Part shown: piece by piece, positions 2,145-60,995 of the stretch
Layout of the letters: the number at the start of each line of letters is the position of its first letter
How positions within the stretch are numbered: the stretch's first letter is position 1
From: Trichosphaerium sp. ATCC 40318
Lineage: Eukaryota; Protista; Tubulinea
DNA length: 64,000 nucleotides
Reading direction: 5' to 3'
Assembly: GCA_038496445.1 (NCBI GenBank)
Contig: JALMLS010000573.1
Location: 62,001 to 126,000 of the forward strand
Notes under the pieces: generated by a model
The model's input: the letters and a program-made list of their open reading frames with translations, nothing else
Databases searched by the model: none
What the model was told of the DNA's origin: nothing
Made by a program: the position numbers and the translations under genes

Positions 2145-2587
2145 TGGCACTTTGAAATGATTGTCAAATAAATATATCATATACTCTGCCTCAGCTTTTT
2201 CTGTCTCTACACTTTTTACTCATTTTTGCTTTCTATTTGTATATTTTAGATCACGTGCCACCGATACACAGCACGTGAACGTTTTGCATTCTGTGATGTT
2301 CTGAAAAAGTAAGTTGTAAAATGTTTCAAAGTGAATTCTAGAATTCTCTTTGACAGCGACAGTCAGAGCGTTTAGCTAGAGTATAGAACAACGAGGCGTA
2401 TAACATACTGTAGCATAAATAACCTTTCGTAAACTCACTTGCGTTGTTTAGTTGTTTGAGCCCAAACCTAGCTTGTGAGGTTGCATCTCGATATCTAAAA
2501 ATACATCACAAAGAAAGGCAACGACTGCCATAGTTATCATTACCATACAAGGACCATAACAACTCAGAAACAGTATATACATACGTA

Positions 2588-3493
2588 ATGCTTTCAAATA
2601 CTAAGAGGATAGGCAATAACCAAACTGTGACAACTTGCACACTCATCGAACTACCAATTGAAATGATAGTTTATATTTTTGACTTTGTAACCTCTACTGC
2701 AAACGTATCTACAGTTTCCCGTCTTTTTCGAGATATTGTGGATAAATACGTCGGTTACAACGATATTTTCATTACAAATGAAGAACAGTTTGCCATGTTG
2801 TGTGGTGGACCTTTACTGAAGAACACAGCAATCCATGTTAAGATGCAATGTGTCAAACCTGAATTGTTTCGCTTTCTTGAAGGTGTACATACCATTTCCT
2901 TATGGGGTTGTAAGGAGGGTGTTATAGACGAATGTATAGCACCTTTAGCCGGAGTACACACTATTGATATTCATCATACAAATATAACAGATAGAGCACT
3001 AAAGATTTTGGTTGGAGTACATACAATAAGCGTGGCACAATGTAAAAACCTTACAGATGATGGTATTAAGTCTCTTGCCGGTGTACATTCTATTGACTTG
3101 ACAGGTACTAAAGTAACAGATAATGGTTTAAAGGCATTGGCGGGAGTACACACAATTGATTTATCAAATTGCCGGAGAGTTACAGATGAAGGAGTCAAAG
3201 CTTTAGCAGGAGTACACACAATCAACTTGTGGAATTGTAAAAAAGTCACAGATGAAGGGTTCAAGGCTCTTTCTGGAGCTTACAATATTGGTTTATCTAG
3301 TACAAATGTAACAGACGATGGCCTGAAGGCGTTGGTAGGAGTACACACTATAAGTATAGCGTACTGTGACGCAGTTACTGATAAAGGAATTAACGCTCTG
3401 TCAAGCTCACATAGTATTCTATTATCAGAAACGATGGTGACAGGATGTTTAAAGGAATTTGATGAGTCTGAAACCATTTATTACTTCATCTGA
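2588..3493 (+). CDS. Intronless F-box/leucine-rich repeat protein
   Basis: F-box-like LIELPIEMIVYIFDFV..VSRLFRDIV followed by ~9 GVHTIxLxxCxxVTDxGxKAL repeats. Confidence 0.85.
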   Translation: MLSNTKRIGNNQTVTTCTLIELPIEMIVYIFDFVTSTANVSTVSRLFRDIVDKYVGYNDIFITNEEQFAMLCGGPLLKNTAIHVKMQCVKPELFRFLEGVHTISLWGCKEGVIDECIAPLAGVHTIDIHHTNITDRALKILVGVHTISVAQCKNLTDDGIKSLAGVHSIDLTGTKVTDNGLKALAGVHTIDLSNCRRVTDEGVKALAGVHTINLWNCKKVTDEGFKALSGAYNIGLSSTNVTDDGLKALVGVHTISIAYCDAVTDKGINALSSSHSILLSETMVTGCLKEFDESETIYYFI

Positions 3494-12607: not shown

Positions 12608-15600
12608 CTATGGGTCCCAAACAGCAATAGAACGACCACTCAATGTAGCATAGACCCTGCCTATGTGCCTTGGATCTACGCCAATTCCGTTCAAGAAAGC
12701 CAAGTGAAAAGTGTCGTTAGTCAATCGTTGCCAAGTCTCTCCAACATTCGGAGAATAGTAAACGCTAAATCCTTCTGTATCTTCAGGTCCTAGTCTTCGT
12801 AAAAAACAACACCTTGTCTTTACTCTAATTGCTTACCTTTAGCCCATAGAGCTACACGACCGTCATAGGCGGATATAGTAGCAACTTCAATACCTCCAGG
12901 TTTACCTGAACACTTGTAAGAATTGTTGTACGAAAGACAAAGAAAACACGTGCCAAATAATTCTTCAACTGAGAAATTACCAACTTGTTTCCTGCACTAT
13001 TCATCAGTATTGTAACATCACCTGTGATTCAGACGCACCAATTATATCCTCCATCTGTAGAGTGCCATAAAGCTTTTCCTCTATTTTGAGTACCGTTTGT
13101 GAACATCAAAGCCCAAAGATGACCAGATCTCGCCTGATCAGAAGCAAGAGCACCGTACACTGAAGGAAAAGCAGAATGCCAATCCTTCATGTGTGTGAAA
13201 GTATCTCCTCCATCATTCGATGTCCATAAACCCGAACCAAAACCCATAACATAATACTTTAGGTCAACAGTAGCATCTACAAATCGACTTAAGTTGGTAA
13301 TAAGTAACTTAATACAAAAAAAAGTGTTGTTGCGCTATGATGTCTACTTTGTGACACTGATGTAAAAGAAGCGATAAAATGAATTGCTTCAAATAGCGAG
13401 AACGAGAATTTGAAGCATGCTAATGGATAACAGTTTTCCCAAAACGGGACATGTTAAGTCGTTCGTACCTCTTGTCATTAAGTGCTTCTCTACGTATTGG
13501 TTCCCTTGGAAAGTTTCCCATAACATTGTAGCAACACGCTTCCATGTTATTCCACCATCTTTTGTTCTCCAAAAGCCACCTTTATCTTTTACAAGATAAT
13601 CGTTTGGATTTGTTAAAGAACCAACACAATCAATAAAATTAAAACCCGTCATTGTTTTGTTTATTGGTTCCTCCTGCTGAAACAGACGTGTCCATGTTTT
13701 TCCAGAATCATGTGTTGTTGCTATCCATCCCTGTCCACCTCTTTGGTTACCTAATACAACCCATGTGTCTCCCCAAAACATTGCACGATGAGCTTCACCC
13801 AAACTGAAAGAGTGTTGTTATTTTCAATGAATAGGTTTGGATCGTACTGGACTGTAGGATTGGTTAATACGCCTCTCATATTAATAATTATTTCCTCTAG
13901 AGTTCCGAAAAACCCTGCAAGGTCCATTGAACCGAAATAAGCGAGGTCACGATCAGGATGAAAATCAACTGTGAACATAACAACCTAACCTAGTAAACTA
14001 ACAAGAAGGTATCATTGTTTTCTTCTCATCTTTTACTTACCTCTCCAACACCTTTAGCTATAAATTGCCAAGTATTTCCGTTATCTCTACTCTCCATAGG
14101 ACCGTCTCCAGTTCCGGTTATCCAATGATTTTCGTCTTTAGGATCTTGAACCTATAAATAGAATAATTACACTGCGCAAGAATAAACAACGTACAAATGC
14201 AGCACGACCGTATGGTAGCCCAGTGGTATTTGGGGCTCTCCATATTGGCATCTTTCCTGTAGCTTGCATAGCAGAATAAGTGTATGTCTCTCCCTTATCA
14301 TTAGATATACCAAGTGATCCAAGCCTGAAAAAAATCAGAAACAACATCATCTCAGCTACGAAGCAAACTGTATTGCACTCGTACCCTGTAGCTGTAGCAT
14401 AGACTAAAGATCCGTTCTTAAGAATATGAATTAAATCAGGTTCGCCATCACGTTGTAAGAACTTATGCGTCAATTCTTCAAATACATACGTCGCTAAACT
14501 GATGAGTGAAAGGCGTCAACTAAAAAACGAAAAGAGCTTCACACATTTTCACCTGACGGCTTGAGCTGTTAAGTGCTCAAAATACTTGGTTAGGCACGTA
14601 CAAGTATCTACCCAGTTTGATGATGTTACTCTGTAATAAACACCTTTTGTATACTTACTACCTTGATTTTCATTTCCGATAAAAAAAGTAGTTCCATCGT
14701 TCATTCGTACAACTCTTCTTACACTAACGAGTGTGCCCTTACCAGTATTAACAGTTTCCCATGTTTTACCATAGTCAAGGGATAGATAAAGGCCAGAACC
14801 ATAACCACCAACCCAGACTTGTCCAGCGAACTTTGGATTTTCATGGATATGTATAGTTCCAACAGCCGTGATATTGTTAAACACCTTTGGCGCTACAGCC
14901 ACCCAAGTTTCTCCAGCGTCTTCAGTCATAAATAGACCCTGCCTTGCACCAGCCCAAACTTTATTGTTATCAGCTGGATCTATAACAATGCATTCGCCAC
15001 CAATGCGAAGAGCATCATTGCCTGGAAACAAGTCAGATTAAACAATTGCGGAGTATCCAAAAACCCGCCTGCGAAATTAACGTGTAGAACGCGCTTGTAT
15101 GTCTTTCCTCCATCAACAGTCTTCCATACACCTTGCCCTGGGTCTTTTGGATAAGGTTCTTGGCCAAGCGCTAAATACACCTCAAAAAAAACCGTTAACT
15201 GCTTTGCCAGGTTGAACTTATTCTTCAAAACTCACTGTATTGACATCCTTTGGGTCTATTGCAATGCCTTGCGTTGACCAAGAGCTTGGATACGCAAAAG
15301 AAGAAGATATCCAGTTCCAATTTTGGCCCATGTCATCAGATCTATAAGCACCGCCTTGGAGAAAATTAATCACGTGACAAAAAAAAAAATTTCATTATAT
15401 TTTGACCCAACATAAAACCCCACGTGAACCTTCGATAAGGTAGTACTTATTGCGATTCAACCACGTGGTAATTATTTTCGATAGTAGTGTCGGTTTGAGG
15501 ATCAGAAAAGTAAATAGAAAGCTCCAGTAACAGTATAACGTACCAACATCTGTTCTACCGTACAATATACCACTTGGGTGTACAGCAACACCTGTGAAGT

Positions 15601-15734
15601 ATCCTCCGCCTGAGAAGTTCATCCATTTCCACTCGCTTTGAACATACGGGATGAAAAGCACTATTGACACGAAAATAACAGCTAGAACATCGTTACTTGC
15701 TTGCTAGTCACAACTTAGTACCTTGAAAGTGCAT
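12608..15734 (-). CDS. Secreted GH74 xyloglucanase-like BNR/Asp-box beta-propeller protein
   Basis: Signal peptide, then WKWMNFSGGGYFTGVAVHPSGILYGRTDVGGAYRSDD; many SxDGGxTW boxes; ends DPRHIGRVYATLSGRSIAVWDP*. Confidence 0.8.
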
Positions 15735-15871: not shown

Positions 15872-16384
15872 TCGAGTTGTTCTGAATATTGATACTTGGT
15901 TGTTCTAGTTAACCTCACATTTATAAGGACCCTTTTGAGTCTTATGGACTGGAGTCACTAAACTGAACTTCACTTAAAAACGGGCTGAGGCAGCTTTGCT
16001 CTATGTATTGATCACGCCAAAAAGTTAAGAGTGTTAAGAAGTCATGACTGACTCCACTCGCTTTAGCATCCAAAATGACATATTCCTTCAGCTATCACCT
16101 TTCTCTTTAGGAACGATACCTGTTATCTATGTAACATCTAAACTCAGTGCTATTAATACTGTAGAAAGTACTTATAGAACGTACAAGGGCTTTATTAACA
16201 TAAAGTATGTTGCTAGGTGATTGCAACCACAAAACCAAAGTATCATTCTGTAAACATAAAGTTTTCAACTTTCACGTGATCAACGAACGTGATTATTGAT
16301 TCCATCAACGAATGTGTGCTTGCAGTGTTCAACACAGTGGGCTCGATTTAGGTAGAAGCAGCATTACCGAATTTAAAAGTTGTG
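15872..16384. repeat. Dispersed repeat A, copy 1 (inverted copy at 50419-50929)
   Basis: High similarity to the reverse complement of 50419-50929 except for a non-matching central segment. Confidence 0.9.
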
Positions 16385-19322: not shown

Positions 19323-22300
19323 TTACTTTGCTGTACTTTCAAGGAGAGCTATTTTTGCCAGAAGAATGGTATTCCTCTCCTTTAGGCTAGTGTTGTCTCG
19401 CATTAGATCTTGGACGCTTTCCTTGAGATTGATAATGGTTTTCTGTGAATTCTGATGAAGTTCAGCCAGGCTCTTCTGTAATTTCTCTACCTTGCTGTTT
19501 GATTCTTGTAATTCTAGTTCGAGATTGACATAATTATAACTTGACTGTTCATCATCAGTTGAATCATCATGGGCAGCCCACAGTTTTCTAGTACAAAACT
19601 TAAGTTTAAAAGAAAAGAGATATAAAATTATACCGGTTAGAAATAAAAGTGTCGTCAGAATCAGATAGTTCATCAGATAGCTCGCCAGCTGAACCATCAA
19701 TATCTACCTTTGAAGCTTGATCTTCAGTTTGTTCATTATCGCCTTTCTCTTTCTTTGTCTTTTTATCAACTTTCTTGGCTTTTGAAGTTCTACGTTTTTT
19801 TGTACGTTTTTTACGTTCAACTTTGATGATGTACCGAGCAACAGCTTGAGTATCTAAAATAGTGTTTGTTTTTTCAATTGTATTGCTGAGTGTACCTTGT
19901 GCCACTACCAGCTCATCGTATACTGCATCTTCAAGTTTATCTGGTGGCAGAAGTTTACCAGCGCGGTCTACCAATGCATAGTGACTTTGATAGCCTGGTT
20001 TTATTGGCCTTCCGTGCAAGCTTTCATTCAAGGTTTTGGTACCATCAGTCTCATATACAAGGGGATCATGCTTTTTATCAAGTAAGTAAAGAATATCTAC
20101 ATCAATATTATTGTTTGCTTACTGGATAAACGTTCCCAGGAGTAACAAGACTTAAAACCAGTGTTTTAAAAGTTCTTCCTTTTAAATCATATGAAGTAGC
20201 ATACCGTATGCTTCTCTATTGCCGAAAATGAATATTGACCACCTGCAAAAATTGGGTAATAACGTACAGTGAAGTATATCCCTTGACCATAGTATCCAGC
20301 ATCTAAAGAACTCACAGTTCCAAAACCAGCCTTTACAATACTGTAAGCTGCTTCTTCGCTTGTTCCATGGACCATCAATATCACTGGTAACTAAATAAAA
20401 TGTTTGTAGTGCACGAGAACCAAGAACATTACCTTATCTTTTTTTTCAGTATAACAATCATTAAAAGTAGTGAAGGCATTGCACTTTTGGTACAGTCTCT
20501 TTGTATGCCTTGTAGATACTTTCTTTCCAATTTTTTTGTTTAAACAACTTGGGCAGTTCTCTAGTAGGTGCATGTTTAGAATCACAAAAATGCCTATGAA
20601 GTGTGGAGCAACCGTACTGATGTCTGTGTGTCAGTATTTCGTTGATTCGACCAAAGTTTTCTGTCAAGATGTCATTATAAACGAGAGTCGCTTCAACGAT
20701 ATTGTATTTGTCATAGCCGTGTAGCTTTGACATCTCCTGTTTGAGGATGTTGAATTCTCTGACAGCCACTTTGTCGTTTTCATCGAGGAGATTCAGTGTT
20801 TTGTAGTGTGTCGCCTTTGCAACAATGCCTCTTTTTATAATATAAGTATTAATAAAAACTAATTGAACGCACGTGTTAGAGCTATTCCAATTATTTGCAA
20901 AATACAATCGCGGATTTAAACTCCATGCGTTTTCACCTTTTAATCCTTTTGAAAACTTTTTTTAGTATTATATCACCACATGCTTCTTACCTTCAGTACA
21001 CTCTTCTTTTAAGGAATCATCTTGACTGTTATTAACCCAAGCATCATTGGGCATATCATGCAGAATACCTCGCATTAATTGCCCATCTTGTTTCCAGAAT
21101 TCCTGTAGAAAAAGAAAGTTGTTTGTAGTGTATACGTTAACAGTGAAGATATCGTACTGGAGACAATACAACTTTGGGATCGCATGCAGAACAAATTAAA
21201 TGACAAATGCCTTTTTCCATTGCCAGTTTGAAATAATACCATGTTGGCTAAACGTTGTATGGTTAATTTAAGGTATTGGTATTCAATAAAGTGTACCAAA
21301 CGGTGAAGCCATTCTTCAAACTCTTTTCTCTCCTCTACGTTGACATTTTGTGAATAGTGCTTTTTACAGTATCTCCACAGTGGATGGCATTGTTTACCAC
21401 TTGGACAGTATTTTAAGAAAGTTATGAATTTTTCAACAGCTGAGGGTGTATTTGATACCACTTCTCTAATTAAAATGAGCATAAAGTATTGCCACTTTCT
21501 TTGGCACGGAGTTACTACTTACAGTGTTAGCTATTATTTCACCAAATTTTTTTGAAATGTGCCCAATACCTGAATCCTTGTTGGTTTTACTTTCATCAAT
21601 AGTATCAATATTATTTGCGTTTGGTTTGATTAAATTCAACATTAGCATTGATATTTTGTCAAAAACTCAAATGATAGTAAATAAACACAGTTTTTATCTC
21701 ATTTGTAATATTACCTGTGTAAATCAAAGCTGTGTTTCCATATTTATCAACAACTTCAATATTGGCGTTGGCATTGAGTAATGTTGATACAACTTCATTG
21801 TGTCCATGTTGTACTAAATAGTAGAGTGAGATATGTACATGTTGTGTATCTCATCATATCATGTTACCTGCATATATTAAAGCTGTCTTTCCATCTTCAT
21901 CAACAACATCAATATTGGCGTTGGCGTTTAGTAAGGTTGATACAACTTTATTGTGTCCTTTTTGTGCTAAATAGTAGAGTGAGATATGTACATGTTGTAT
22001 CTCATCATATCATGTTACCTGCACATATCAAAGCTGTCTTTCCATCTTCATCAACAGCATCAATATTGGCGTTGGCGTTGAGTAAGATTGATACAACTTC
22101 ATTGTGCCCTTCTTGTGCTAAATAGTAGAATGAGATATGTACATGTTGTATCTCATCATATCATGTTACCTGCATATATTAAAGCTGTCTTTCCACCTTT
22201 ATCAACAGCATCAACATTAGCGTTGGCGTTGAGTAAGATTGATACAACTTCATTGTGCCCATGCCATGCTAAATAGTAGAGTGAAATATGTACATGCTGT

Positions 22301-23475
22301 ATCTCATCATATCATGTTACCTGCCCATATTAAAGTTGTACTTCCATGTAAAGTAACAGCATCAACATTAGCATTGGCATTAAGTAAGGTTGATACAACT
22401 TCATTGTGCCCATTCCATGCTAAATAGTAGAGTGAGATATGTACATGCTGTATTTCATCATATCATGTTACCTGCATATATTAAAGCTGCCCTTCCATAT
22501 GTATCAACAGAATGAACATTAGCATTGGCATTGAGTAAGGTTGATACAACTTCATTGTGTCCTTCCCATGCTAAATAGTAGAATGAGATATGTACATGTT
22601 GTATCTCATCATATCATGTTACCTGCATACATTAAAGCTGTCATTCCACTATATTTATCAACAGAATCAACATTAGCATTGGCGTTGAGTAAGATTGATA
22701 CAACTTCATTGTGTCCTTTCCATGCTAAATAGTAGAGTGAGATATGAACATGTTGTATCTCATCATATCATGTTACCTGCCCGTATTAAAGCTGTCATTC
22801 CACTATATCCATCAACAACATCAATATTAGCATTGGCGTTGGCGTTTAGTAAGGTTGATACAACTTCATTGTGTCCTTTTTGTGCTAAATAGCAGAGTGA
22901 GATATGTACATGTTGTATCTCATCATATCATGTTACCTGCATATATTAAAGCTGCCCTTCCATATGTATCAACAGAATGAACATTAGCATTGGCGTTGAG
23001 TAAGGTTGATACAACTTCATTGTGTCCTTCCCATGCTAAATAGTAGAATGAGATATGTACATGTTGTATCTCATCATATCATGTTACCTGCATACATTAA
23101 AGCTGTCTTTCCACCTGCATCAACAGAATCAACATTAGCATTGGCTTTGAGTAAGATTGATACAACTTCATTGTGTCCTTCCCATGCTAAATAGTAGAGT
23201 GAGATATACATGTACATGTTGTATCTCATCATATCATGTTACCTGCCCGTATTAAAGCTGTCATTCCATCGTTATCAATAGAATCAACATTAGCACTGGC
23301 ATTGATTAATGTTGAAACAACTTCATTGTAGCCATTTGTTGCTACACTTTGTCAACTTTTTGCTTAGTAAGCATTACAAACCTGCAAAAGAAAACACAAT
23401 ATCAATTATGGGGATGTTGTTGGTCGGTTCTTCCTGTTCTAAATGTTGGTTTTTGTCATTCTGCGATTCTGTCAT
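19323..23475 (-). CDS. Ankyrin-repeat (11 units) + helical linker + H-Y-E ADP-ribosyltransferase (PARP-like) + basic/acidic/coiled-coil tail; apparent frameshift at ~20490
   Basis: ATG at 23475; spliced AAxxGHNEVVSxLLNANANVDxxDxxGxTALIxA repeats; MVHGTSEEAAYSIVKAGF..AGYYGQGIYFT..RYATSY..VTPGNVYP..GYQSHYALV..YDELVV. Confidence 0.85.
21715..23341 (-). repeat. 151-bp exon+intron tandem array (99-nt ankyrin exon + 52-nt intron)
   Basis: Donor motif gttacctg at ~21863, 22014, 22165, 22316, 22467, 22618, 22772, 22932, 23083 and 23238. Confidence 0.95.
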
Positions 23476-25130: not shown

Positions 25131-25530
25131 GTCATGTGATAGGTACACATTGCTGATTGCACCTGCATCCTAAACACTAGTGACATGTAACCAGCTTCAC
25201 ATTGTGATAGTTCTCTCAGAACTGTCATGTCTTGTAAGGTCTGAAAGAGTTGCAAGTTTTTGCTAGAAATAGATAACAATCAAAATTTTCCCATGCATAT
25301 TTCTCAGCGCTCTTTTCAACTTTCTCTGATATAAGCATAATCCATCTTGATCATGGTTGTAAGTGCGACGTGCACTCCATATTGAATTTAGCATTTACCA
25401 ACAAAGCTGTCGAAGTACAAAGGGGTTAGAACGTCTAGATTGGTCGGTCTCTTTGGTTTGTACCGATTAAAGCCAAACACGTGTTCACTTGTTTATCTCT
25501 GTCCGTCATAGGAAGCGAATGGTTATATTA

Positions 25531-25754
25531 GAACAGATTCTACTCAATCTACGAAGGCGGATGCTCTCGCGGCATGGTACTATATAGCAGTTATCAATGA
25601 AAGTAATATTTTACAACAAGGATACCATGCTTTTATTAATTGCGCCAAAGACAGAGTCGTTCAAGAATACGGAGCTGGTATTTTAATCGACATTCATGGT
25701 GCATCAAGCCACTCATAACGCAGTGCCAAGAACTAACTTAACCAAAGACGGTAC
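25531..25754 (+). pseudogene. Duplicated internal fragment of the FGase-like gene (source ~53767-54013)
   Basis: High identity to the reverse complement of 53767-54013, including an intron, with small deletions. Confidence 0.9.
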
Positions 25755-34700: not shown

Positions 34701-34753
34701 CTCTTTAGTGCAAGAATTTTACTAGCTTGAGGCTGCAAAAGCAAAAGGTTATT

Positions 34754-34835
34754 CGACACGAGCAGGATTTGAACCTGCGCGGGCAGAGCCCAATAGATTT
34801 CTAGTCTATCTCCTTAACCACTCGGACATCGTGTC
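34754..34835 (-). tRNA. tRNA-Ser(AGA)
   Basis: 82 nt; GACACGA/TCGTGTC acceptor stem, G73, CT-AGA-AA loop, long variable arm, GGTTCAAATCC T-loop, downstream T run. Confidence 0.95.
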
Positions 34836-35542
34836 ATGCGATGGATTTCTAACAGGATCCTAACGATCCGGTTCGGCAGGGTGACACTCACCCATCATTG
34901 CGAAATTGGCTGTCCAACCACAAGGCACTGCCCAATGCATACATTTCCGTGCTTTCGAGCATTGACGATATACCCTTTATAGTGCCTTTCTGCAGAACAA
35001 TCCCTTATCTTCCAATTTCACGCTTACCAACGATTTGAATACCTTGGAACAAAACATTGTTTTGTTAATGCGTAGGTGCAGTGCGCGAATGCCTACAGCG
35101 CGAATTGTTTTAAAGCTGAAATTATACGCACAAGAATTACACCTACGCGTAGAAAGTACTATCAAACGATTTAGAGTGAAACGGCGGTTTTTTGCCGCCC
35201 TATATCCTATATGTACCAGGCAGTGTTCAAGAGAAGCTAGAAGAGAGAACAGTGGTTATTTTGCGATATAGTGGACCACAGCTATTAACAAATGGAAAAA
35301 ACTACGGAAGAGAAAGTCTTTGAATGTCAACTGTTCCTTTTACCGCCCTAAAGGTGTAATACTCTTACAACAGTTGCCTGTAGATAACGTTGCTACTAAC
35401 AAAGTCCCTTAGGCATCTCGCTGTGCAGACCCACTGTTTCAAATCGTTGCGACTGTGACATAAAAAAAAGGTGTTTGTATTTTAATCAATAGACGTCTAT
35501 TTACAATGTACAAAGTAACATAAAATTTGGTTGTGTAGTTGC

Positions 35543-37792
35543 TTAACCAAGCTGATACCGCCATCTAAGAGAAAAAAAATCAGCAAGTCAACCCAATAAA
35601 CAAAAAAAAATAAGAAAAAGGTCTTTGCTCCTTTCTAGAGTTTCGTACATTTTTAACATCCTATCTTTTGAGCCTGAAGCAACACGCTCTCCATCAGGTG
35701 ACCAATCAACAGTATATACCTATTCAGCATAAGCCATTTTTTTGAAGAAGAAAAAAGGAACTTAAAACGTCTTTCAAAGAAAAAAAATCAGAACACTAGT
35801 TGTGCGTCATATAAACTCAGATGAGCTGGGTGTAATTCATCACGTAAATAAAGTCAAAAAAACTCAACAAATAAAGGGAAAACAAATCCTTTTGTGTTTG
35901 CAAACAACGTACTTCATCAAGATGGCCAGGCATATCCATCTTTAATTTTTTTGTTTTCAAATCCCAAATTTTTACTGTAGAGTCTCTGCTTCCGCTTACA
36001 ATTAATCTAGAGTCTCCAGACCAACACAGTTGGTAAACCTCACTAACATGGCCACGCAGGGTGGCTACATAGCGTCCGGAACTTGTCCATAGTTTAACTG
36101 TTCTGTCAAACGATGCAGAGGCTATCCACTGTCCATTTGGAGAAAATTTAGCAACTAGTAAGACCGTTAGACGATATGTATAAACGCGTAGACGTGGATC
36201 ATTTACGCGTACCATTAATGGGTTTAGAGTGACCTGTAATCCTTTTAAAAGGTTTAAAAGATGTAAGAGGGTTCCACAAGAACATTGTAAAGTCATCAGA
36301 GCCAGATAATAGTTTCTCATGAGATTTTCCTTTAGCTTCACAATAACGCTCATAAGCAGCCTTTACAGCTTCTTTATCATCTTCTGGACGTTCACCATGA
36401 TAATCAAAAGGACCTGCGCGAAGCGCATAATCAGTGTTTAACGCTAGAGTGTTCACCCAGTGACCATGACCTTGAAGTCTGTGTAATGTAGTTCCCTTTA
36501 GATGAAACGTTAACAAAACAGAGAAAGACTGCTTAAAAACTACCGATTGTGTACCTTGTTGGCATCCCAAACGCGTATTGTCTTATCTTCAGATCCTGTG
36601 TATATGAATCCTTCTCCTCCCCATTTAACGCATGTAACAGCACTAGTATGCCCACCAAGTGTAAAAATCCGCCTTCTGTTGTCTACATTCCATACAATCG
36701 CTGTACCATCTTTTGATGCTGATACAAGGCGAGTGCACTTTGGATTTCTTGAATAAGAGTAAGAAATTATGAGATGGAAAAAAATGTGTCATGTTGTCCA
36801 CTCTTTAGAGTAAGATCGTCCTTTTATTGACAAAAGCAAACGTACGCGTGGAATGGTTCCCATGAAAGAGCAGTGATGAACTAAAAGTACCACTTGTTAG
36901 AGAAACATCAAAGGCTTTAAAAACTTTCGAATAAAGACACAAATTCTGTGAATTTTTACAAGTTGCATTGATAACTCAGAGCGTACCTTTTTGTGACCTG
37001 AAAGAACGCCCCTTGATCTGCCTTCTCTGGTCCATAAGCGCACTGTAGGATCTTTTGAAGCAGAACCAGAAGCAAGTATTCTTCCGTCTGGTGACCATTG
37101 TACATACAACACCCAATCGCGATGTGCTTTTAGTTCCTTTAGAGGTAATAAGTACGAGAAAACGTCAAAATAAAAATTTCACAAAAATAATGACGCCAAA
37201 AAGCGTGTAGTGCTTTAATGCTGATGTAGTCTACGTACTTTGATAGGCGTTTCAGTGAGCATATCCCAAATACGCACTGTGTGATCGCCAGAGGCTGAGG
37301 CGAGTAATTTGCCATCAGGGCTGAAAGAGACGTTCAAAATTGCTTCATCGTGTCCTAGGATTAGTATGAGCGCGTGCCATATGCACTACGATCGTTTAAA
37401 AAGTGTACATTACCAGGTAAGGTGGAGGAGCAATGAGTAACGCAACGAACGCGGAAAACAGCTTGTGGGTGGTACACGATGGGTATTGTTACTTCATCTC
37501 CACCATCAACAGCCAAATTTGTTTTCTCAATACAGTTATTTATGCTGTCAGTTACTTCTACGTCATCAATAGAAAACGTGTACGGTAGTGGGTCTTCCTG
37601 AGCGTTAGGTAAGACAGAAAAGTGAGAAAAACTAGAGTAAAACATGCTTACATTCTTTAGAATAGACTTATTTAAGAGTACGTGGAGCGCCTGAGCATTA
37701 GTTTCTAACGGTATAGAAAAAGGAGCTCCAGCTTTGTCACCGTCACTTGTAACAAACTGAATAAGACCTGTTCTACCCTCAAGCTCGGTCAT
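35543..37792 (-). CDS. NLE1: Notchless (NLE domain + WD40 repeats), ribosome biogenesis
   Basis: [24 protein letters not shown]; [25 protein letters not shown]; [13 protein letters not shown]; [19 protein letters not shown]. Confidence 0.95.
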
Positions 37793-37883
37793 ATTGAATG
37801 TAAATTGTACTATGCCAAAATACTCACAGAACAGGCGGTGTTTTAAGTTTGAGGATGGCTTAAAGCAACGGGAAACGCCAACG

Positions 37884-39249
37884 ATGCATGCGTTGAACTA
37901 CGGTGGCACCTACCTTCGTAAAGCTTTTGGCTTGGTTGCCCACTTTCGAAAGCCAGAACAGGCAAATTGATACATCAGCTCGTTCTGTAGTCTAACTTGC
38001 GTACAGGGCATCCACAACTACGAAGAGCTCTCTCGCGCAAGTGCCTTCTTTGTACCTTGCAATACTGGCAAAAAGTGCGCTATTACGATTTAGGCAACCG
38101 CCGTTACCTAAAGAACTCACAGAAAATACAATGTGGTAAGCATAGCGCACACGCCTCGTCCTTGGCTATTTCCAAGCCTGTTCCCAAAATCAAACCCACA
38201 GTACAATTTCGTTCATGTACGATAACCACCAGAGCTAATCCAATAGCCAAACCAACCAAAATTAAAAAAATATTTTTACTTTTTGTAAAAACGTGCTGTA
38301 TTCGAAACTAACTCAAGTGTCGCGTAGTGGCTAAACGACGATGATATTCGTATTTCTATTACACTGAGGGAGCTACGGAGTGGTAAGCCTCTTGCGCAGG
38401 CTGTGTGTAAAAAGAACCCTCACGTTAGTGTGAAGGACGATATAATTGTGTTGCAGTTGGAGGTTTGTTTAGCTTAATGCAGACCTTTTTGTTGAGTCTC
38501 CTCTCCTTGAACGGTTACCGACTATGGTTAGGATGAAGAAGGTTTTGAAGACGATTTGGACGAGCATGGCGTTGTCATAGATGCTCTTGATATGCAATTT
38601 GAAAACGATATCCACATGGCAAGATTTATTTACAAGTTTTCTTCTTCACTGAAACTAACAAAAAGTTTGCAGCCCGTTAAAGTAATTGGTAATGAATTCA
38701 AGCAAGATCCTACAGATATGGGTACTGGTTTAATAGTACCTTGTTCTATTGATGGAGAGCACTGGGGTTTTTAGTACGTGCCAGTTCTGGAAAAAACAAA
38801 ACAACTTTTTGATTTTTTTTCTGCCTTTACTTATTGTTTCTTGTAGCAAAGATATGTCTAATATACTTATAAAACATCAACTGGGACCAGATTTAGATTT
38901 GGCTGGATTATGTGGGTCTCCAGTAGTTGTTAAAGAGCCAGCGCAGCCAGGAAGCCCCTTCCCGTTTATGGTATGCTTGATGTTTACTAAACAAGTGCTC
39001 ACAAACCTTTTTAGCTAACGTCTAGATTCATTGGTGTTGTAACAGGAAAGATGGTACCAGATTTTACGCAACAAGGCGCCGATAAGTCGGAGATAAGGGA
39101 AACGCTTGAAAAAGTACATAATACATTGCAAGTACGTGCAGGCAATACAGCATTCTTAGATTTGACGTAACACCTTTTTGTAGGTCACAACGGCAGCTGC
39201 TTTACATCAAGCGCTAATAGATGCTGAAGGTCGTACAGGGAATGATTAA
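37884..39249 (+). CDS. Chymotrypsin-fold (PA clan) peptidase-like protein with Cys at the nucleophile position
   Basis: Spliced motifs RASAFFV..VVSIAH (His)..DDIIVL (Asp)..AGLCGSPVV (Cys; TGT at 38911). Confidence 0.6.
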
Positions 39250-46900: not shown

Positions 46901-47587
46901 TTCGGGCGTCTAAATGACACTAAAAGTGTTGATTTACCTATTCCTCAGTAAGACAATAGCAGTTATCAAAATACGCTAACATTACCACTCATGGATGTCC
47001 CTACGATATAATTAGTGAAATGAAAGTGTCATATAACCTACCTAAAACAAGTAATTATCGGAATCGTTGATTGTTGCCATTATTATTAGCTTGTTGTTAG
47101 TAGATAACAAGTTTTGTTTTTCTCATACTACCTAAATGAGATTAAAACCATAAGCTTGTACTTGTAGTAGACTTGTACTTTTTCGTCGCTCATTTACTTA
47201 TTTACGCAGTAAATACTTATAGCATGTTATTCCTTTAAGTCAGACGGCTGAAAAATAAGTTCTAAACCATTTTTTTTACAGAGGTTTTACCTATGTATCT
47301 AAAGCAAACTAATCAAAGCCATATAGAGAATGTAAAAAAAAGCATGTGGTGCCATGGTACAACACCAGCAAAATGAATGAATATCCAACAACACTGGTAT
47401 TCAGAAAGCACTACTGGTGATTATCAGCTTGTTTTTCTTTGTTTTTTCTGGTTTATACAATGGGTTTTTGTAGTTATAGATAGCATGGGTATGTGGTTGG
47501 TGGTTTGTTTTGTGTTAATAGTCGTTGCAGAGCCTTGCTTACCCTGCTGCAGCGGATTATTCGGTACCTCTTCCTATACCATCGCAT

Positions 47588-47669
47588 GACACGATGTCCG
47601 AGTGGTTAAGGAGATAGACTAGAAATCTATTGGGCTTTGCCCGCGCAGGTTCAAATCCTGCTCGTGTCG
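47588..47669 (+). tRNA. tRNA-Ser(AGA)
   Basis: Same as 34754-34835 except one variable-loop base. Confidence 0.95.
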
Positions 47670-47774
47670 AATAACCTTTTGCTATCGCGTGTTCTATGTT
47701 GTTAGAACACGCTTCAGTAAAACGCTTGTGCTCAAAGCCTAGGTTTACTTTCTCACTGAGTAAAAGTCTTCGTT

Positions 47775-48727: not shown

Positions 48728-50419
48728 GGAATTGACTCAAGTTATCGATAAACTTTTGTATCGATAATTTTTTTTCACCTGCCTGAGATATTGTTTTTCT
48801 GGCTCTTTGGCCGGCTATTATTCTCAAGACCGGCCATCCATTGCACCAATTCCGGCTGATTTACCGGCTGTCAATAAAGACAATCGGTGGCTGAACTTCA
48901 TGACTAGGCGTCATGATGGGTCTTGGTTCTTTAGTACTTTGTTGACGGTGCTGGTGCTATAAAAGTAGGGCACCAATACCAAAAGGTAGCCGCCTAACCC
49001 TCCAGTAGTGTACAATCAACCACCTCCAGTGTAGAATCCTTTTGTATACTTCACATTACACTGCCTGAACTTCACCTCAACAAAGACGTACTGTTTTGGT
49101 GTAGTGCATATAAAGGTGCAATGTGAGGAACATGATAGGAAGCATACCTACAGACAAAGTCTGATTGAAATAGGTTTGCTCTGTATTTCTAAAAAGTATA
49201 TTTATAAACGTTGTAACTACATATTAACTTTGTATTACAGCAAAATATTGCTTTTCGTGTATTACGCCTTCTTTTATTTTTCGAAACACACGGTAGAACA
49301 GTTTGAACCTTCATAAATTGAAAAATTTGTCATGTGGCTCTTTTACCTGCCATGCTTGACAGGCATGTACACTACTACTACCAATTAAATTAGTATTATT
49401 TGTAAAAAACCTATACAGGCTTCAGTACTGCAAGCTCGAAATCACAAGTCACACGTGCTACTTTTGTTTTTGGTACTAGCATAAATTTATAAATTTATAC
49501 TTTGGTAACTTGTTACATTTCATGATGTTATTTTTCCTTGAGATATACCTTGCAAAGTCTGTTAATTGCTGTAGCTGGCCAGAATTCAGAGACATATTTG
49601 AATGTTAATAGAAATTCATTAGCTGTACGCAAAAAGCATTCTGAGGTGAGCAAGCAGTTTCATATGTATAATTCATATAGCAATTGGAAGTTGTAGCTAG
49701 TGGTGAAGTCGTTATCGCTGCAGGTAACAACAACAGTAATGTTGCAACTTTCTTAATTGCGAGGGTTCCTCGTGGTATAACGTGCACATCAATAAAAGAA
49801 GGGTTGTGACGAATTCAACATTTAAAAAGTGATAAATTTATGTGTCCTATCACATTGCTGGATTCAAAAACATATGAAATTTGATCCCAGTTACATGAGC
49901 CATAGCGTGAATCTTGGCCACTGACCATTATACTTGAGCCAACACTGTTTTGAAAGGCATAGTTAGCTATATACAAGCTTGTAAGCTGTACGTACTAGTG
50001 ACGAATGTGGCTAGTATTTTTAGTTGTATTGTAATCTGAATGTATATTACTATTCGCGGGTTGGTTGAACAAAAATCCAGACCTAGAAATGTATTCAGTG
50101 GGTTGTGTAGCGTTTTATTGGAGCCACAGAAGTAGCAAAATCAAAACTAGAGATATTTTCATTTAGTGCAAGCAAAGGCTTAGGCTCCAAAGAAGGACAG
50201 TGCCGTTCATTGCAGAACATGCCTAAGTTGGTATTATCACCGCATTCATTTACCTATTGTTTGTACTACAAGGCCAGCAGAACAACCAACTTCTACGGCG
50301 TTTCTTGATGCCGGCTATTTCACTGGCATCAACCAGCTTCCCCGGCTTTGTGGTTCATGGTCACGTGAAAAAAAAAATATTATCGATACAACAGGTTATC
50401 GATAATCTGAGTCAATTCC
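48728..50419. mobile_element. ~1.7-kb DNA transposon relic with TIRs and CCGGCT subterminal repeats, possibly hAT-derived
   Basis: GGAATTGACTC..TTATCGATAA..TATCGATAAT at the left end mirrors the right end ..GAGTCAATTCC; decayed minus-strand KKVATLLLLLPAA..SECFLRTA; no TSD. Confidence 0.65.
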
Positions 50420-50929
50420 ACAACTTTTAACTTCGGTAATGCTTCTACCTCAATCGTAAGCCCAGTGCATTGAACACTGCAAGCACACGTTCGTTGATCA
50501 CGTGAAAGTTGAAAACTTTATGTTTACAGAATGATAGTTTGTTTTTGTGGTTGCAATCATCTAGCAACTTACTTTATGTTAATAATGCCCTTAGTACGTT
50601 CGAAACGTATTTTTTACAGTATAAATAGCAATAATTAGCTCGTCGTTCATTTGTTCTCGTATGTTAGTTTCCCTTCCAAGGATGAGTCAAAGACTCGTAA
50701 TCACTGTACTGTCAGGAATATGACATTTTGGATGCTAAAGCGAGTGGAGTCAGTCATGACTTCTTACACTCTTAACTTTTTGTGCGTGATCAACACATAG
50801 AGCAAAGCTGCCTCTGCCCGTTGTTAAATGAATGTCAGTTTAGTGACTCCAGTCCATAAGACTCAAAAGGGTCCTTATAAATGTGAGGTTAACTAGAACA
50901 ACCAAGCATCAATAATCAGAACAACTCGA
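50419..50929. repeat. Dispersed repeat A, copy 2 (inverted)
   Basis: Matches 15872-16384; homology stops exactly at the right TIR of the adjacent element. Confidence 0.9.
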
Positions 50930-51167
50930 ATTTAATAAATTATGATAGATTTTAGCTTGGATAAATAGCTTTACTCTTTGTACAAACAGTTTTGTACTTG
51001 TTTGGTTTGAGTCAATTTCATATTTTTCTAAATCTTTGTCTGTAAATGTATAACAACTAAAAACCCAGTTGTCATGGCTAGGCGTTTTTGTAGAACGAAA
51101 AGATAAAGCTGTTCATACTCACGCAATTTGTTTTTTTAAATGTAGCTGAGTTTATTTTTGAATGTTT

Positions 51168-53072
51168 TCAAGCTTCTGTGCGTACAGCAGATGTTGCTAC
51201 GGACTTAATGGTTAATTCTGTCGAGTTTACAGATCCTTTTTTAGCGTTGTTAGGTGGTTGGAATGAATACACCTTAAAGAAGTTATTTATACAACCAAAT
51301 ACGAAAAAAATAGGAACAATGTACTTGTAGGATAGATAACAACATTTGAAGCAAATAAAATACGCCTGTACTCATTGTAGTAGCAATGACAGCCGTGTTT
51401 TTACGGGTAGGTATAGCCAGTATGATAATACTTAAAAGAAGTAAAGACATCAGAACAGTGTTGGCACTCATACGGAAACGTATCTCGAAAGGGAATTAGA
51501 TCTAATGAAAGATAATTTTGCTTTGAAATTCAAAGAAAAAAAAAGGTATGTGGTACTTTTCTCAGCGCTGTTTTCGATGTCTCCTTATCTGTTATTCTGG
51601 ATAACTGCTGGTATATCTGGATTAATACTTAGTTCATACTTATACTAAGGATGTTTGAATCACGTGCTTGATAGAGGATAAACGTGCTGTAAATCAAAGT
51701 TGTCAAGTTAGTGATAAAGTTAAGAACATGAGGCAACAATGTTACAATTGTTGGCGACTCGTTGGTAGATATGCGTGCAATCGATGATCCCACTTCAAAC
51801 AAGACTAACACGGCGAACAGAAAAAAAAATAGAGCTCTAAAGCGTTTTGTATGCAAGAACTTATGTCCAATCAAACCTTTATGAACTAGAGTCTCGTGCC
51901 TAAACATGGTGTTACAGCATAAAGGAGTAATTGATTCTTTGAGGTACCAAAACATTGTTATCATTACGTTTGTTATTGTAGTGAAGGGTGTGCTGATTGT
52001 TAGGAAGAAGGTATCTGCTTGATAGTGGTATAAACGATGAGATCCTAGAATGTTTACAATACTAACTAGTTTCACTATTTTTTTTGTTATTGATAAGTTA
52101 GGAGTGGATCTTGGCGTACAAACGCTTGCAAAAAGCTCGATGGATATAGCCATGACTCCAAGAGATAGTCCACAATATCCTTTAGAATAATATTGGTAGA
52201 ATCTACGGAAGTATAAGACTGTATATGTAGAGTGGTTCAACAGACTATTTCATTTCAGTGTACCTCAATAAACAAAGTGCTATTACACTAACGCAAAGCG
52301 CCATAAGTACAGTCTGGAATAAAGCATGCCAAACACTTGTAAAGTAATCATTACATTTGTTTCCGCCTGAACAAAAATGTGTAAGTATGATGAAAAGAGA
52401 ACTTGAGCAGGCTAAACCTGGAGTAATTTCTATCTCCAAAGTAGTGTTTGAATATAGTTTTGGTGTGTCGTCAGTCTGTATTTCAATTATTGGCGTACTC
52501 AATTGGCGAGAAGCTTGCTCTTTAACAGGCGGGTTGGTAAAGAGATAGTAAATCGACTTTCTTTGAAATTAAATAATAAAAAAATAATACAATCACGTGA
52601 CATGGCGATTGTTTTAATAAAATTCCCAATTGTGCCATTAAAGTATTCACGTGATCTACTATTAAAAGTTTTCTATGGTACCATAGAAAAAATACATAGA
52701 GCATCCTGTACTCATGTATGTGCTTGACCATGCGAGTAATACCGCTTTGTATTGTTTACTAGCTTCTATTATAACACCACTTGTCAACTCTGAGTGAAAT
52801 AAAAGAACTGCGTCTCCTTTATTTGCGTTACAATGTATGGGAAACAATAAGACTGTAAACAGGTGGTTGAGATTAGCCGGAGAAACAGTAGTACCGTTTA
52901 ATCCACTTTTGTATCGCACAAGAGAAAAGTTGTGGGCTGAAACAAATGGTGTTTCGTTTATCCATTCAGATGAAGGTATTGTTGTTCCAATTAAAGGACC
53001 AGAAAGAACGCGTAATGCGCAATACGAAGCGGAAACGAAAAGAAATAGAATAAATGGCGTAATTACGCCCAT
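51168..53072 (-). CDS. Signal peptide + PA-like ectodomain + 7TM protein, paralog 1
   Basis: KAVLLAWS..G..TPIIEIQTDD..LEIEITP PA-like pattern followed by about seven hydrophobic segments; inverted paralog at 58131-59973. Confidence 0.7.
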
Positions 53073-53348
53073 TATCGTATGTAGGTGTCGCGTGCTTTGC
53101 AGTATTAAAGTATTGGTTTGATTTGAAGCATGTTAAGTTAGATTTATTTTCTTATTTAGTTCGAGTTTGTGCAATACTTCACTAACAAGTACCGTGTGCA
53201 TTACGTAAATCTTGACCCTTACAAATCTCAATACAACCCACAACCAATATGGCTAATACACTAAAACGGAACAACCCAACTTTTAGTTTTATGTAGGTAT
53301 ACAAAGCTATATTAAGCGTATTCAAATGTAGAACAGATCAGGTTTGTT

Positions 53349-54528
53349 TTAATACTGGTACCATTCTGTCAAGAAATCTACTATAGCATCTCCTATATCA
53401 TCTCCGTAGTCAGGTATAGCAGATGACCTCCGTAAATGAAAGGGACTTTCTATTTGAATAGCATCAACTGTGCCTGAGTCTCTACTTCCGTGATTTCTTA
53501 CAATAAAACCACCAGTGTAGTATCCGTATGACAAAGGCTTTGGAGTGCCGGGAGAAGGAACAACGTAATAGCCGCTATTCTCTAGTAGAGCTCCTAGGCT
53601 TTCAATACCTCTGATTATTTGAGAAAATGGAGTTGAAGAAAAAGTTGCAGCAAGGTTAGAAATACTTCCTTTCGAAGAAATAGCGTCTAAACCAGCATCT
53701 ACAGGATTAAAACCAAGTTAGTTTTTACGTCGGTTTCTATACAAATCACGTGATATACACGTTGGCGTACCGTCTTTGTTTAAGTTAGTTCTTGACACTG
53801 CGTAGCCAAGCTCAACCCATTGTTGTGAGTGGCTTGATACACCATGAACGTCAATCAAAAGACCAGCTCCGTATTCTTGAACGACTCTGTCTTTGGCGCA
53901 ATTAATAAAAGCATGGTATTTATCCCTGGTTTAAATATTACTTCTTGATAACTCCTATATATAGTACCATGCTGCGAGAGCATCCGCGTTCGTAGATTGA
54001 GTAGAATCTGTTCTGTCACGGTTCATATCGACCTATTTTTAGAATTAACGTCATTTCGGAGTTTGTATACTATTACCTTCGCTCTCCTTATGTATGCCAC
54101 AATTGTATGTGTTGTATTACCTGTTAAGCTTGAAATTCGATTAGCAATGCGTTCAGCCAAATTTATTGTTCGGGTGTCAGCACTTGTTGATCCTAAATAA
54201 AGAATCAATTGCTATGTTTTACATAAAGAACTGTTTGACTGCTTACCGGAGGTTCTGTCTGGGATACTGGAAGGTGCTATTAACCCACCGTGTGGGACAG
54301 AGAGTATAATTGGAAGGTTTCCTGTTGTATATTTGACATATTGGTTACTGCCATCGTAGTTGATATCACCAGCGCTATGGGACTGTAGCGGACATGGATC
54401 GAAAGAGCAATAGCAATAAGATATTAATACAATACCTAATTGTATAAAAGAGTTAGGATTGGTAGGTAGAAATATGTAGTGTTATTCGTAGCCGTACCGA
54501 AAATTAAGAGGTGTGTTGTCGTTGGCAT
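53349..54528 (-). CDS. N-formylglutamate amidohydrolase (FGase)-like protein with signal peptide
   Basis: GNLPIILSVPHGG..ADTRT..DMNRD..YHAFI..LLIDVHG..VELGY..YYTGGFIVRNHG..DAIQIESP. Confidence 0.8.
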
Positions 54529-57505: not shown

Positions 57506-58130
57506 CTAGATAACAATAAAAAAAAACAAGATTGCCGTTTGATTAAGCCGTACCAATGTAAACGTTCTTGCCCATGAGAAATTTAAAATGCAATACTTGT
57601 GTTAAAGTTCTTAGTGAGTAATAGATATCACGATAGGAGTTGAGTTAAAAAAAGCAAAACGTTTTTGTTGGTCTTCACCTTTACAAATGAAGTAATTTAT
57701 GCAGTTGCTTACATGCTCCGTGTTTTTACTATCAAAGCAATTATACTCTTTCTTTTCTTTTTAAAATCAACAAACTCTGTGACTTCCTCAAGCGCAAATC
57801 CGCCAACTCCTTCTCTTTTCCTTTCGCTGCATCACCTTAGGAAGGACCCCACTGGAGTTCTTGAAATGAAGTTGGTGCTCAGTGATGAACAACTCAAAAA
57901 TGGATTATCGTTAATCGTTTTTATTGTTAGGTAGATGGAGTTACCAAAATTGTAAGCCAACTGAGTTTTGTAAGGGTCAAGATTTACGTACTGCACGTGG
58001 TACTTGTTAGTGAAGTATTGCACAAACTCGAATGACAAAAACACTAAATAAGAAAATAAATCTAACTTAACATGCTTCAAATCAAACCAATACTTTAATA
58101 CTGCAAAGCACGTGACACCTACATCCGATA

Positions 58131-59973
58131 ATGGGCGTAATTACGCCATTTATTCTATTTCTTTTCGTTTCCGCTTCGTATTGCGCATTACGCGTTCTTT
58201 CTGGTCCTTTAATTGGAACAACAATACCTTCATCTGAATGGATAAACGAAACACCATTTGTTTCAGCCCACAACTTTTCTCTTGTGCGGTACAAAAGTGG
58301 ATTAAACGGTACTACTGTTTCTCCGGCAAAGCCCAACCGCGCTGTAGAGCCGGCTTATGATATTATTTAATTTTATTGTTAACTCCCAATTAAAGGAGAC
58401 GCAGTTCTTTTAGAACATTCAGAGTTGACAAGTGGTGTTATAATAGAAGCCAGTAAACAGTACAAAGCAGTAATTATTGAATGGTCAACCACATACATGA
58501 GCCCAGGATGTTCTATGTATTTTTTTTACGGTACAATTTTGGAGACTTTAAAAAATCCTTTTTTTTGTGAATCACGTGATACTTTATTTTTCTCTATTTT
58601 GTTGAAAGTACATGATTATCTTCTTACATTTGTTAAAGAACGAGCATCTCGTCATTTGAATGTACCTGTAGTTGAAATAAGTCGGGACGATATAAACGTA
58701 CTGTATTCAAACGATACGTTAGAGATAGAAATTACTCCTGGCACGCACTGCTCTCGTTTCTCTTTTCTTGTTGCTCTATAATCATTGCTAACTTTGGTCA
58801 GGCGGAAATAAATGTAATGAGTACTTTACCAGCGTGTGGCATGTAATATTTCAGACAGTTCTCATGGCACTCTGTGTGAGCGTTATTGCACTATGTTTCT
58901 ATAGGTACTAAACTTTTATATTTGTGTAAGCAATAACCTTATCTTTACGCCTATAGGCTATATCAATATTACTCAAAAAATTATTGTGGTATGTCTCTGG
59001 GTATTGTAGCAATATCCATCGAGCTTTTTGCAAGTGCACGTGCGTCAAGCGCCGTATTAATGTCAACTTCTGAATTTTTTTTTAAACAGTGAAGTTTATC
59101 AGCATTATAAACTTTTTTGGATCTCATCGCTTGTATCACTACCAAGCCGATGATTTTCTACTTACATTTAGTACACCTTTCACAACGATAACAAATGTGA
59201 TGGTTACGATGTTTTGGTAAGTGAATGAAACGCTTTAAAAAACAACTTAAACTAAGGAATTAAGGCATGAAGCTCTTGTACATAAAGGGCTTGCTGTACA
59301 CAAGTTCTTGCATACGACACTCTTCAGAGTTTTATTTTTCATGCTATTCGTTATTCTAGTAGCGTTCGAAGTCATGGCATCAATTGCACGGCTAGCTTCT
59401 AATGACACTCCTACTATTGTGGTATTGATACCTCATGTTCTTAACTTTGTAACAAACCTGGCAACTTTGATTTACAGCACGTTTATCCTCTACCAAGCAC
59501 GTGAATCTTAATACATAAAGCCACTTGGTATTAATGGGTTAAACCTAGGTATACAAGAAGTTATCTATCGCAGCTAAGGACACTTCAAAGAGCGTGCTAA
59601 GAAAAGTACCTGATTTAGTTGTAATAGTGAAATCTAATTCCTTTTCCAGATACGTTTCCGTATGACTGCCAATAGTGTTCTGTTATTATTACTTCTTATT
59701 TGTATTATTGTATTGGCTATACCACCTCCAAAAAAAACAGCTGTTATTGCAACAACATTGATTACTGGCGTGTTCTATGCACTTCAAATATCGCTATCAA
59801 TTCTACAGGTACATTGAAGAAAAAAAAAAGAATTCCTTTTTTTTTAGTTGTCTAATGCGTTGTCAAAGGTTTATTCGTTCCAACCGCCTACAAAACCTAA
59901 TAAAGGATCTACTAACTCTACTGAAATAACAATAAAATCTGTGGTATCAGAAGTTGTAACCACAGAAGCTTGA
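58131..59973 (+). CDS. Signal peptide + PA-like ectodomain + 7TM protein, paralog 2
   Basis: Same exon structure as 51168-53072; exon 1 nearly identical, remainder diverged. Confidence 0.7.
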
Positions 59974-60995
59974 AAAAACAAAATAAAATTATTGTCTTCT
60001 TTTTTCTTAATATGGTACTGAACTATCTTCAGCTGTGTCCCTATTATTTGCGTCATTTTTCATGCATGCATCAATTTTTCCATTGCATAACAGGCTCCTC
60101 ACGTTGATTACAATGGGTGGGTAAGAATAAGGATTAAGTTTTTAATTAAAAAGCTCTTTTGCAATCCGGTCAATTCCTGTGAAACCAAAAAAACGTTCAC
60201 CAGCCAGAAACCGTAAACTAGTTGTTTATAAAAATAAGGCGAAATTATATCCATTGGAAGTGCCACATGTGGACACGATAAAGCGAGTAGCAGTTGTACT
60301 TTTTAAGTTTCTTTCTCGTAGCTCATTCCGGAACTAGCCCGCGGAGAACCGAATCAAGTTTTAACTACAGTGTTATTGATCCTCCTTGTAGCATTTGGAG
60401 AATAATTCGAGCCTAGAAGATAACACATAACTATTTTTTAAGACTGTTTCCTGGATTTCCAATATCGGGATTACCTCTTTCTAAATATCAACCTTAAAAC
60501 GCACCTCGTTACACAAGACATATTGTTTCTTATGGCAAGTACCATATTATTTTATAGGTGCTTAAACTGGTTAATGATGATTTTAGGCTAACGCAACTTC
60601 GTTTATAGCTTGGGCTGTTTATCGCCGTTACAACATACACTCCACCGATCATGTAGATGGAAAGAATAAAACTAGGTAAGAAATATATGCATCTCCCAAA
60701 TTTTATTAGCATCACAATACTGTATGTAAACCACGTTCAGCATATCAAGGCGTGTCACCAAAATATAGAAGGCGGTTGGTACTTAATCACGTGTCTTATC
60801 CTAACTTTAATACAAAAACAGATCTAAAAGCGAGACTGTCAAAGTTGGCATTACCGAAAACTGCTGTAGCGTCTCAATAGGGAAGAATGTTTTCCGAGAA
60901 ACAACTCAAAACACCAAAACGAACATGTACTACTGCTATGTAACAACTAGGGAGCCTGTCATTTTATTGTGATACCAAACAAGTTACAAAAGGCA

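Follow-up and report, generated by a model that had tools for sequence, protein, structure and literature searches.

Amoebal cell-autonomous defence is poorly known, and a gene in which an array of ankyrin exons precedes an ADP-ribosyltransferase (ART) domain raises the question of whether a diversifying recognition arm has been coupled to an effector enzyme, as was proposed in an earlier note on this DNA. The gene lies on the minus strand of the window, namely, the whole 64-kb stretch of DNA analysed, where it runs from an ATG at 23475 to a stop codon at 19323; the window holds no other paralogue of it. Our analysis indicates that the gene, whose assembled sequence is frameshifted, probably belongs to a Trichosphaerium multigene family with ankyrin repeats, a middle domain, a PARP-type ART and a coiled coil, and that this family probably evolves by unit amplification and selection on the binding face.

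The gene model was searched exon by exon, with the break kept as X (Table 1). An exon of 94 nt is followed by 11 ankyrin exons of 99, 102 or 108 nt, and TRF resolved the array as a tandem unit with a period of 151 and 10.6 copies (score 2229). Exon structure and TRF thus agree on the earlier count of 11 ankyrin repeats with one per exon, and the turn and helix-1 variants listed at that time are all present. The exon borders separate repeat position 11 from position 12 within helix 1, and each exon therefore encodes one repeat in a shifted register. On the 3′ side of the array, twelve more exons with GT-AG ends encode a cap, a middle domain (~160 residues, with no match in Pfam or Atlas), the PARP-type domain and, after a charged tail, a coiled coil. 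Introns 19854-19895, 20216-20267, 20391-20432, 20561-20617 and ~19588-19633 were confirmed by spliced contigs of close paralogues, and one array intron and intron 1 are also spliced in such transcript contigs.

Table 1 Features of the ankyrin-ART gene (window positions)
Feature	Position	Strand	Evidence or remark
Exon 1: start codon and ankyrin N-cap	23382..23475	-	Splice to exon 2 seen as loose transcript ends at 23382 and 23343
Eleven-exon ankyrin array, phase 1-1	21715..23341	-	TRF, exon structure, Pfam, codon comparison
First four ankyrin exons	23243-23341, 23088-23186, 22937-23035, 22777-22884	-	
Next four ankyrin exons	22623-22724, 22472-22570, 22321-22419, 22170-22268	-	
Last three ankyrin exons	22019-22117, 21868-21966, 21715-21813	-	
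Ten homogenised GT-AG introns (52-56 nt) between ankyrin exons	21814..23242	-	Diversity 0.038 per site; splice 23036-23087 in transcripts
Exon 13: degenerate C-cap and linker	21570..21665	-	
Unnamed middle domain, four exons (21297-21514, 21158-21247, 20991-21102, 20873-20945)	20873..21514	-	Also in paralogue P0002 and L045
N-terminal part of ART domain, exons 20618-20830 and 20433-20560	20433..20830	-	
Break: frameshift near 20491 and premature stop 20461-20463	20461..20495	-	Two-base indel relative to paralogue transcripts
Catalytic exon with HGT and GIYF motifs	20268..20390	-	98% identical to P0001
ART exon after GIYF	20123..20215	-	
ART exon with GYQSHY and catalytic Glu (DELVV)	19896..20070	-	Acceptor at 20071 inferred; similar acceptor in L045
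Last ART strand, then basic and acidic low-complexity tail	19634..19853	-	
Final exon, with a predicted coiled coil and the stop codon	19323..19587	-	

The H-Y-E signature of an ART, recognised earlier from its first two motifs and a DE pair, was found in the window exons as HGT (His 20367-20369), GIYF (Tyr 20274-20276) and DELVV (Glu 19912-19914). These motifs align across the family, with the Glu assigned by motif analogy. The window catalytic exon matches Pfam PARP at E 3e-4, which is below the curated cut-off, and the ART of the paralogues exceeds this cut-off (PF00644). A structure model of a paralogue ART, of low confidence (mean pLDDT 53), gave a Foldseek match to PARP10 (E 1e-6) and resembles the catalytic folds of PARP10 and tankyrase (17-20% identity). 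The best PDB sequence matches by phmmer were PARP12, PARP10 and PARP4 (E 0.01 or worse), and tankyrase was absent from them. By fold, PF00644 and H-Y-E motifs, the domain is of PARP type (ARTD), and it would act as an enzyme in intact copies. Its nearest named relative is an MMETSP0405 transcript protein (taxid 498012, Trichosphaerium sp. ATCC 40318), which is 92% identical to the window catalytic exon. In a quick tree, built without clade-1 sequences, six Trichosphaerium-type ART rows cluster with an SH-aLRT of 99. The window ART is a member of a larger branch marked by a GYQSHY motif. The same branch lies behind Roco-COR, LRR, EGF, SH3, SAM and ankyrin domains in contigs of other organisms. 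A viral origin of the ART was considered and rejected, the viral contigs having no relative of it.

Several further members of the GYQSHY branch were observed. Three AT-rich eukaryotic contigs of Ga0209960 and ERZ778024 (L030, L031 and L036) carry ankyrin ORFs, a long Roc-like ORF and then an ART of this branch that is interrupted by introns; a layout of one ankyrin repeat per exon is not seen in them. L010:43-6699 is one long ORF with a myosin-motor-like start (by eye only), ankyrin-like matches and an ART of this branch at its end. Two proteins (P0004 and P0013) each have two tandem ART domains of the branch, and Gln replaces the catalytic His in many of its members.

In the window copy the frame shifts within exon 20433-20560, and translation ends upstream of the exons that carry the His, Tyr and Glu. 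The frameshift precedes the catalytic His, and therefore no enzyme would be made from this copy as assembled; the fusion of effector and array that had been proposed is thus not intact in the window copy as assembled, and a transcript contig with its own letters was absent among the matches listed. All contigs that cover the break (three runs, among the best-supported contigs listed) differ from the window by the two-base indel near 20491. They represent a paralogue ~94% identical to the window among the matches listed, and at many ART positions the window's own letter occurs in none of these contigs, absence from contigs being no proof. The copy does not appear long dead, because the frameshift is the sole break in the gene, no splice site is damaged, and over 105 nt the catalytic exon matches that of an expressed paralogue without a difference. 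We lean slightly towards a recent (young) null allele, and an assembly indel or polishing error is a serious candidate that we hold to be a little short of probable. The Trichosphaerium assembly, the likely source of the window, was made with Canu and Pilon (PMC10521059), and such an assembly may, in our view, leave indels in multicopy genes. While the frameshift stands, the window copy is a poor experimental target, and the family is the object of real interest. A hidden intron skipping the break was also rejected: the one 40-nt GT-AG candidate requires a 12-nt micro-exon, would delete the conserved LFxxxxW stretch and was seen in no transcript.

[quoted passage not shown] In the array, replacements are concentrated at positions 2, 3, 5, 10, 13 and 14, positions 22, 30, 31 and 32 vary less, and position 33 is almost invariant. 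The earlier claim that variation occupies the target-contacting positions of DARPins thus holds for 2, 3, 5, 13 and 14 but not for 33, and positions 10, 22, 30 and 32 also vary. Two position sets were fixed beforehand, namely, the classical DARPin set and 2, 3, 5, 10, 13 and 33 (PMC4308713). For the classical face set, pairwise pN was 0.41 versus a pS of 0.19, with a framework pN of 0.10, and the concentration of non-synonymous change at these positions was significant by permutation (p = 0.0004). Omega estimated from minimum events was 2.6-3.3 for the face (p 0.002-0.005) and 0.5-0.7 for the framework, these values being based on only 8-13 synonymous events and on a synonymous yardstick that conversion can lower. 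An even spread of changes over the repeats, against which the earlier note had set its proposal, was accordingly not found in this small sample. Given the few synonymous events, the evidence for selection is good but not final, and the array is best described as conserved repeats with apparent positive selection on the binding face. A diversifying binding arm ahead of a PARP-type ART is further supported by L001, a spliced paralogue transcript in which a single contig, bridging an N gap, links seven ankyrin repeats to the ART (P0002).

The same data bear on a rather unlikely explanation, according to which a recent tandem expansion was followed by substitutions surviving only at tolerant surface sites, the protein being a PARP for housekeeping or signalling that acts as a scaffold like tankyrase and is engaged in no arms race. 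The variable positions of the array are naturally high-entropy positions in all ankyrins (PMC4308713), and some variation there is therefore expected anyway; the broken state of the window copy also fits. Outside the array (19323-20830), comparison with the nearest expressed paralogue among the matches listed revealed in-frame indels, and 23 of the 28 differing codons outside the HGT exon are non-synonymous (5 synonymous), which is near neutral; the non-ankyrin parts of the gene may evolve fast too. However, tolerance yields an omega of up to 1, not the value obtained for the face, and the 105-nt identity of the catalytic exon to a paralogue speaks against this explanation.

The introns of the array are more uniform than its synonymous sites (0.038 vs 0.14-0.19), with p = 0.003 when all exons were included and 0.07 with the core nine. 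This uniformity underlies a second and quite improbable explanation, in which the constant intron would act as a signal for recombination or splicing, so that ankyrin exons are reshuffled or skipped during a single lifetime and an adaptive-type receptor-effector repertoire results. Phase 1-1 exons would remain in frame in any order, exon 5 has a mosaic look, and many ankyrin junction variants occur among the transcript contigs; this variety, however, is explicable by paralogues alone. Recombination between units was not detected by a PHI-like test (p = 0.05; p = 0.39 when each codon contributed one site) or by a parametric test (p = 0.21, with no excess over recurrent mutation), and no recombinase or transposase was found nearby among the 20 ORFs scanned. 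A hairpin as the cause of intron conservation was rejected, its strength being no better than that of shuffles (z -0.38 to +0.75). The peptides encoded by exons 4 and 7 are identical; the two exons differ by 1 nt and lie three units apart, which suggests duplication of a three-unit block. The likeness to brown-algal repeat-exon genes drawn in the earlier note is a fair analogy in its layout, but unit shuffling is not borne out by these tests.

A relative in metagenome assembly ERZ25072490 (L045; GC 45%, low coverage) allows the steps to be ordered. It has the same order of parts as the window gene and ART intron positions in common, and its five ankyrin exons of 93-99 nt have the same phase-1 donor after Ala11. 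Its own units, however, are alike at only 59% in exons and 53% in introns, compared with 84% and 95% in the window array. Because the layout is shared while the repeats have diverged and the introns are unrelated, one repeat per exon is old and ancestral for this gene type; because L045 has no homogenised units, homogenisation is a later event of recent tandem amplification. The exon layout therefore came first, and its presence without a constant intron makes ordinary tandem amplification, acting on a symmetrical unit, a better account than a dedicated machine. The array intron pattern was absent from the metagenome contigs searched. Likeness between repeats is 80% within L001 and 69% between L001 and the window, and subfamilies therefore homogenise separately. 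A last and very improbable explanation takes the frameshift as real; the locus would then act as an ankyrin decoy, truncated and lacking the enzyme, or would supply repeat exons to active paralogues. In its favour, the array and its splice sites show no damage upstream of the break, and pseudogenes and inactivated repeat exons are found among the ROCO loci of Ectocarpus, but a premature stop would invite nonsense-mediated decay and no contig with the letters of this copy occurred among the matches listed.

The surroundings of the gene had been described as a transposon-rich zone. Dispersed repeats do lie near the gene, but neither transposase nor reverse transcriptase was present among the 20 ORFs scanned in the window, and the description was not upheld. 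These repeats, at 89-98% identity, are located at 15872-16343 / 50459-50929, 25530-25719 / 53822-54014, 34735-34882 / 47541-47688 and 48728-50419; the set includes a 48-nt inverted pair enclosing 1.6 kb and possibly represents non-autonomous elements. An inverted duplicate gene pair (51165-53230 and 57962-59976) has blocks 74-98% alike, and a 296-nt block at 98% suggests recent conversion. The window also contains a Pro/Thr-rich repeat protein (25-2141), an F-box and LRR gene (2534-3490), a multi-exon glycoside-hydrolase-like gene (13000-15700, by eye) and a Notchless-like WD40 gene (35800-37900, by eye). Its GC content is ~36%, and that of the Trichosphaerium draft genome is 37.7% (PMC10521059); taken with the nearest named relative of the ART, this makes Trichosphaerium the probable host.

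On the preferred reading of a family evolving by amplification and face selection, the old, symmetrical phase-1 layout would let the exon-intron unit multiply, unequal crossing-over and gene conversion would homogenise introns and framework, and selection would preserve novel residues on the concave face that binds. Homogenisation of repetitive introns has been described before and ascribed to unequal crossing-over (PMC9779670). Intact paralogues would bind a protein target via the ankyrin groove, the H-Y-E domain would ADP-ribosylate this target or itself, and the coiled coil would provide oligomerisation; in the course of evolution, duplication, conversion and selection would readjust the specificity. 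That the intact paralogues act in defence, or in another setting of conflict, is about as likely as not, by analogy with precedent and with the viral exposure of the host, whose genome is reported to contain 1581 gene models of giant-virus origin (PMC10521059). The bolder view, that Trichosphaerium has a large and actively recombining DARPin-like sensor repertoire wired directly to PARPs, is unlikely; giant viruses or intracellular bacteria would be its targets, and broken copies such as the window gene would represent turnover or donate exons. If the preferred reading is true, a PARP with an arm evolving like an immune receptor ties repeat-array recognition directly to ADP-ribosylation, and the family constitutes a natural library of ankyrin binders.

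The window gene belongs neither to the tankyrases nor to the NLR or ROCO genes. Tankyrase (PARP clade 4) likewise has ankyrins ahead of an H-Y-E PARP fold. The window gene differs from it in the 17-20% identity of the structure alignment, its homogenised repeats, and an extra middle domain and coiled coil. As noted earlier, tankyrase-type SAM and five-cluster ARC architecture are lacking: Pfam found no SAM domain between ankyrins and PARP in the window pieces or P0002, and the 11 repeats form one uninterrupted array rather than five ARC clusters. Ankyrin-PARPs without SAM are said to have arisen several times and include those of Dictyostelium (ADPRT3), C. elegans (PME-5), Naegleria and Monosiga (Perina 2014, PMC4245714); variable arrays are not described for them, and ADPRT3 and PME-5 are clade-1 PARPs, the window ART belonging to an apparently divergent GYQSHY-type branch. 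Fungal NLR ankyrin arrays combine high internal conservation with positive selection on the inner helices and beta-hairpin (Dyrka 2014, PMC4986451), and in their near-identical repeats under positive selection they resemble the window array. In contrast to them, the window gene has a C-terminal PARP as output and one repeat per exon, and NACHT, NB-ARC and Roc-COR were not found by Pfam in the window pieces or P0002. The Ectocarpus ROCO-LRR and NB-ARC-TPR genes share one repeat per exon, a selected binding face and pseudogenes (Zambounis 2012, PMC3341825), but they use LRR or TPR instead of ankyrin and a GTPase or NB-ARC output, and evidence of shuffling has been published for them. Repeat-exon genes of Tetrahymena, another protist, share fixed-length exons, one intron phase and recent clonal expansions, and differ in being LRR genes of phase 2 that are linked to a retrotransposon (PMC6564038). 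The MaSp2 and flagelliform silk genes of Argiope also consist of tandem exon-intron units with homogenised introns (97.6%, vs 95% in the window), but they encode structural proteins without diversifying sites (PMC9779670). ADP-ribosylation is unmentioned in the main text of the Trichosphaerium genome paper (PMC10521059), and our literature search, which covered few subscription journals, found no paper on the combination. The ingredients are each known singly; in this family an ankyrin exon array, an apparently selected face and a PARP-type ART are combined.
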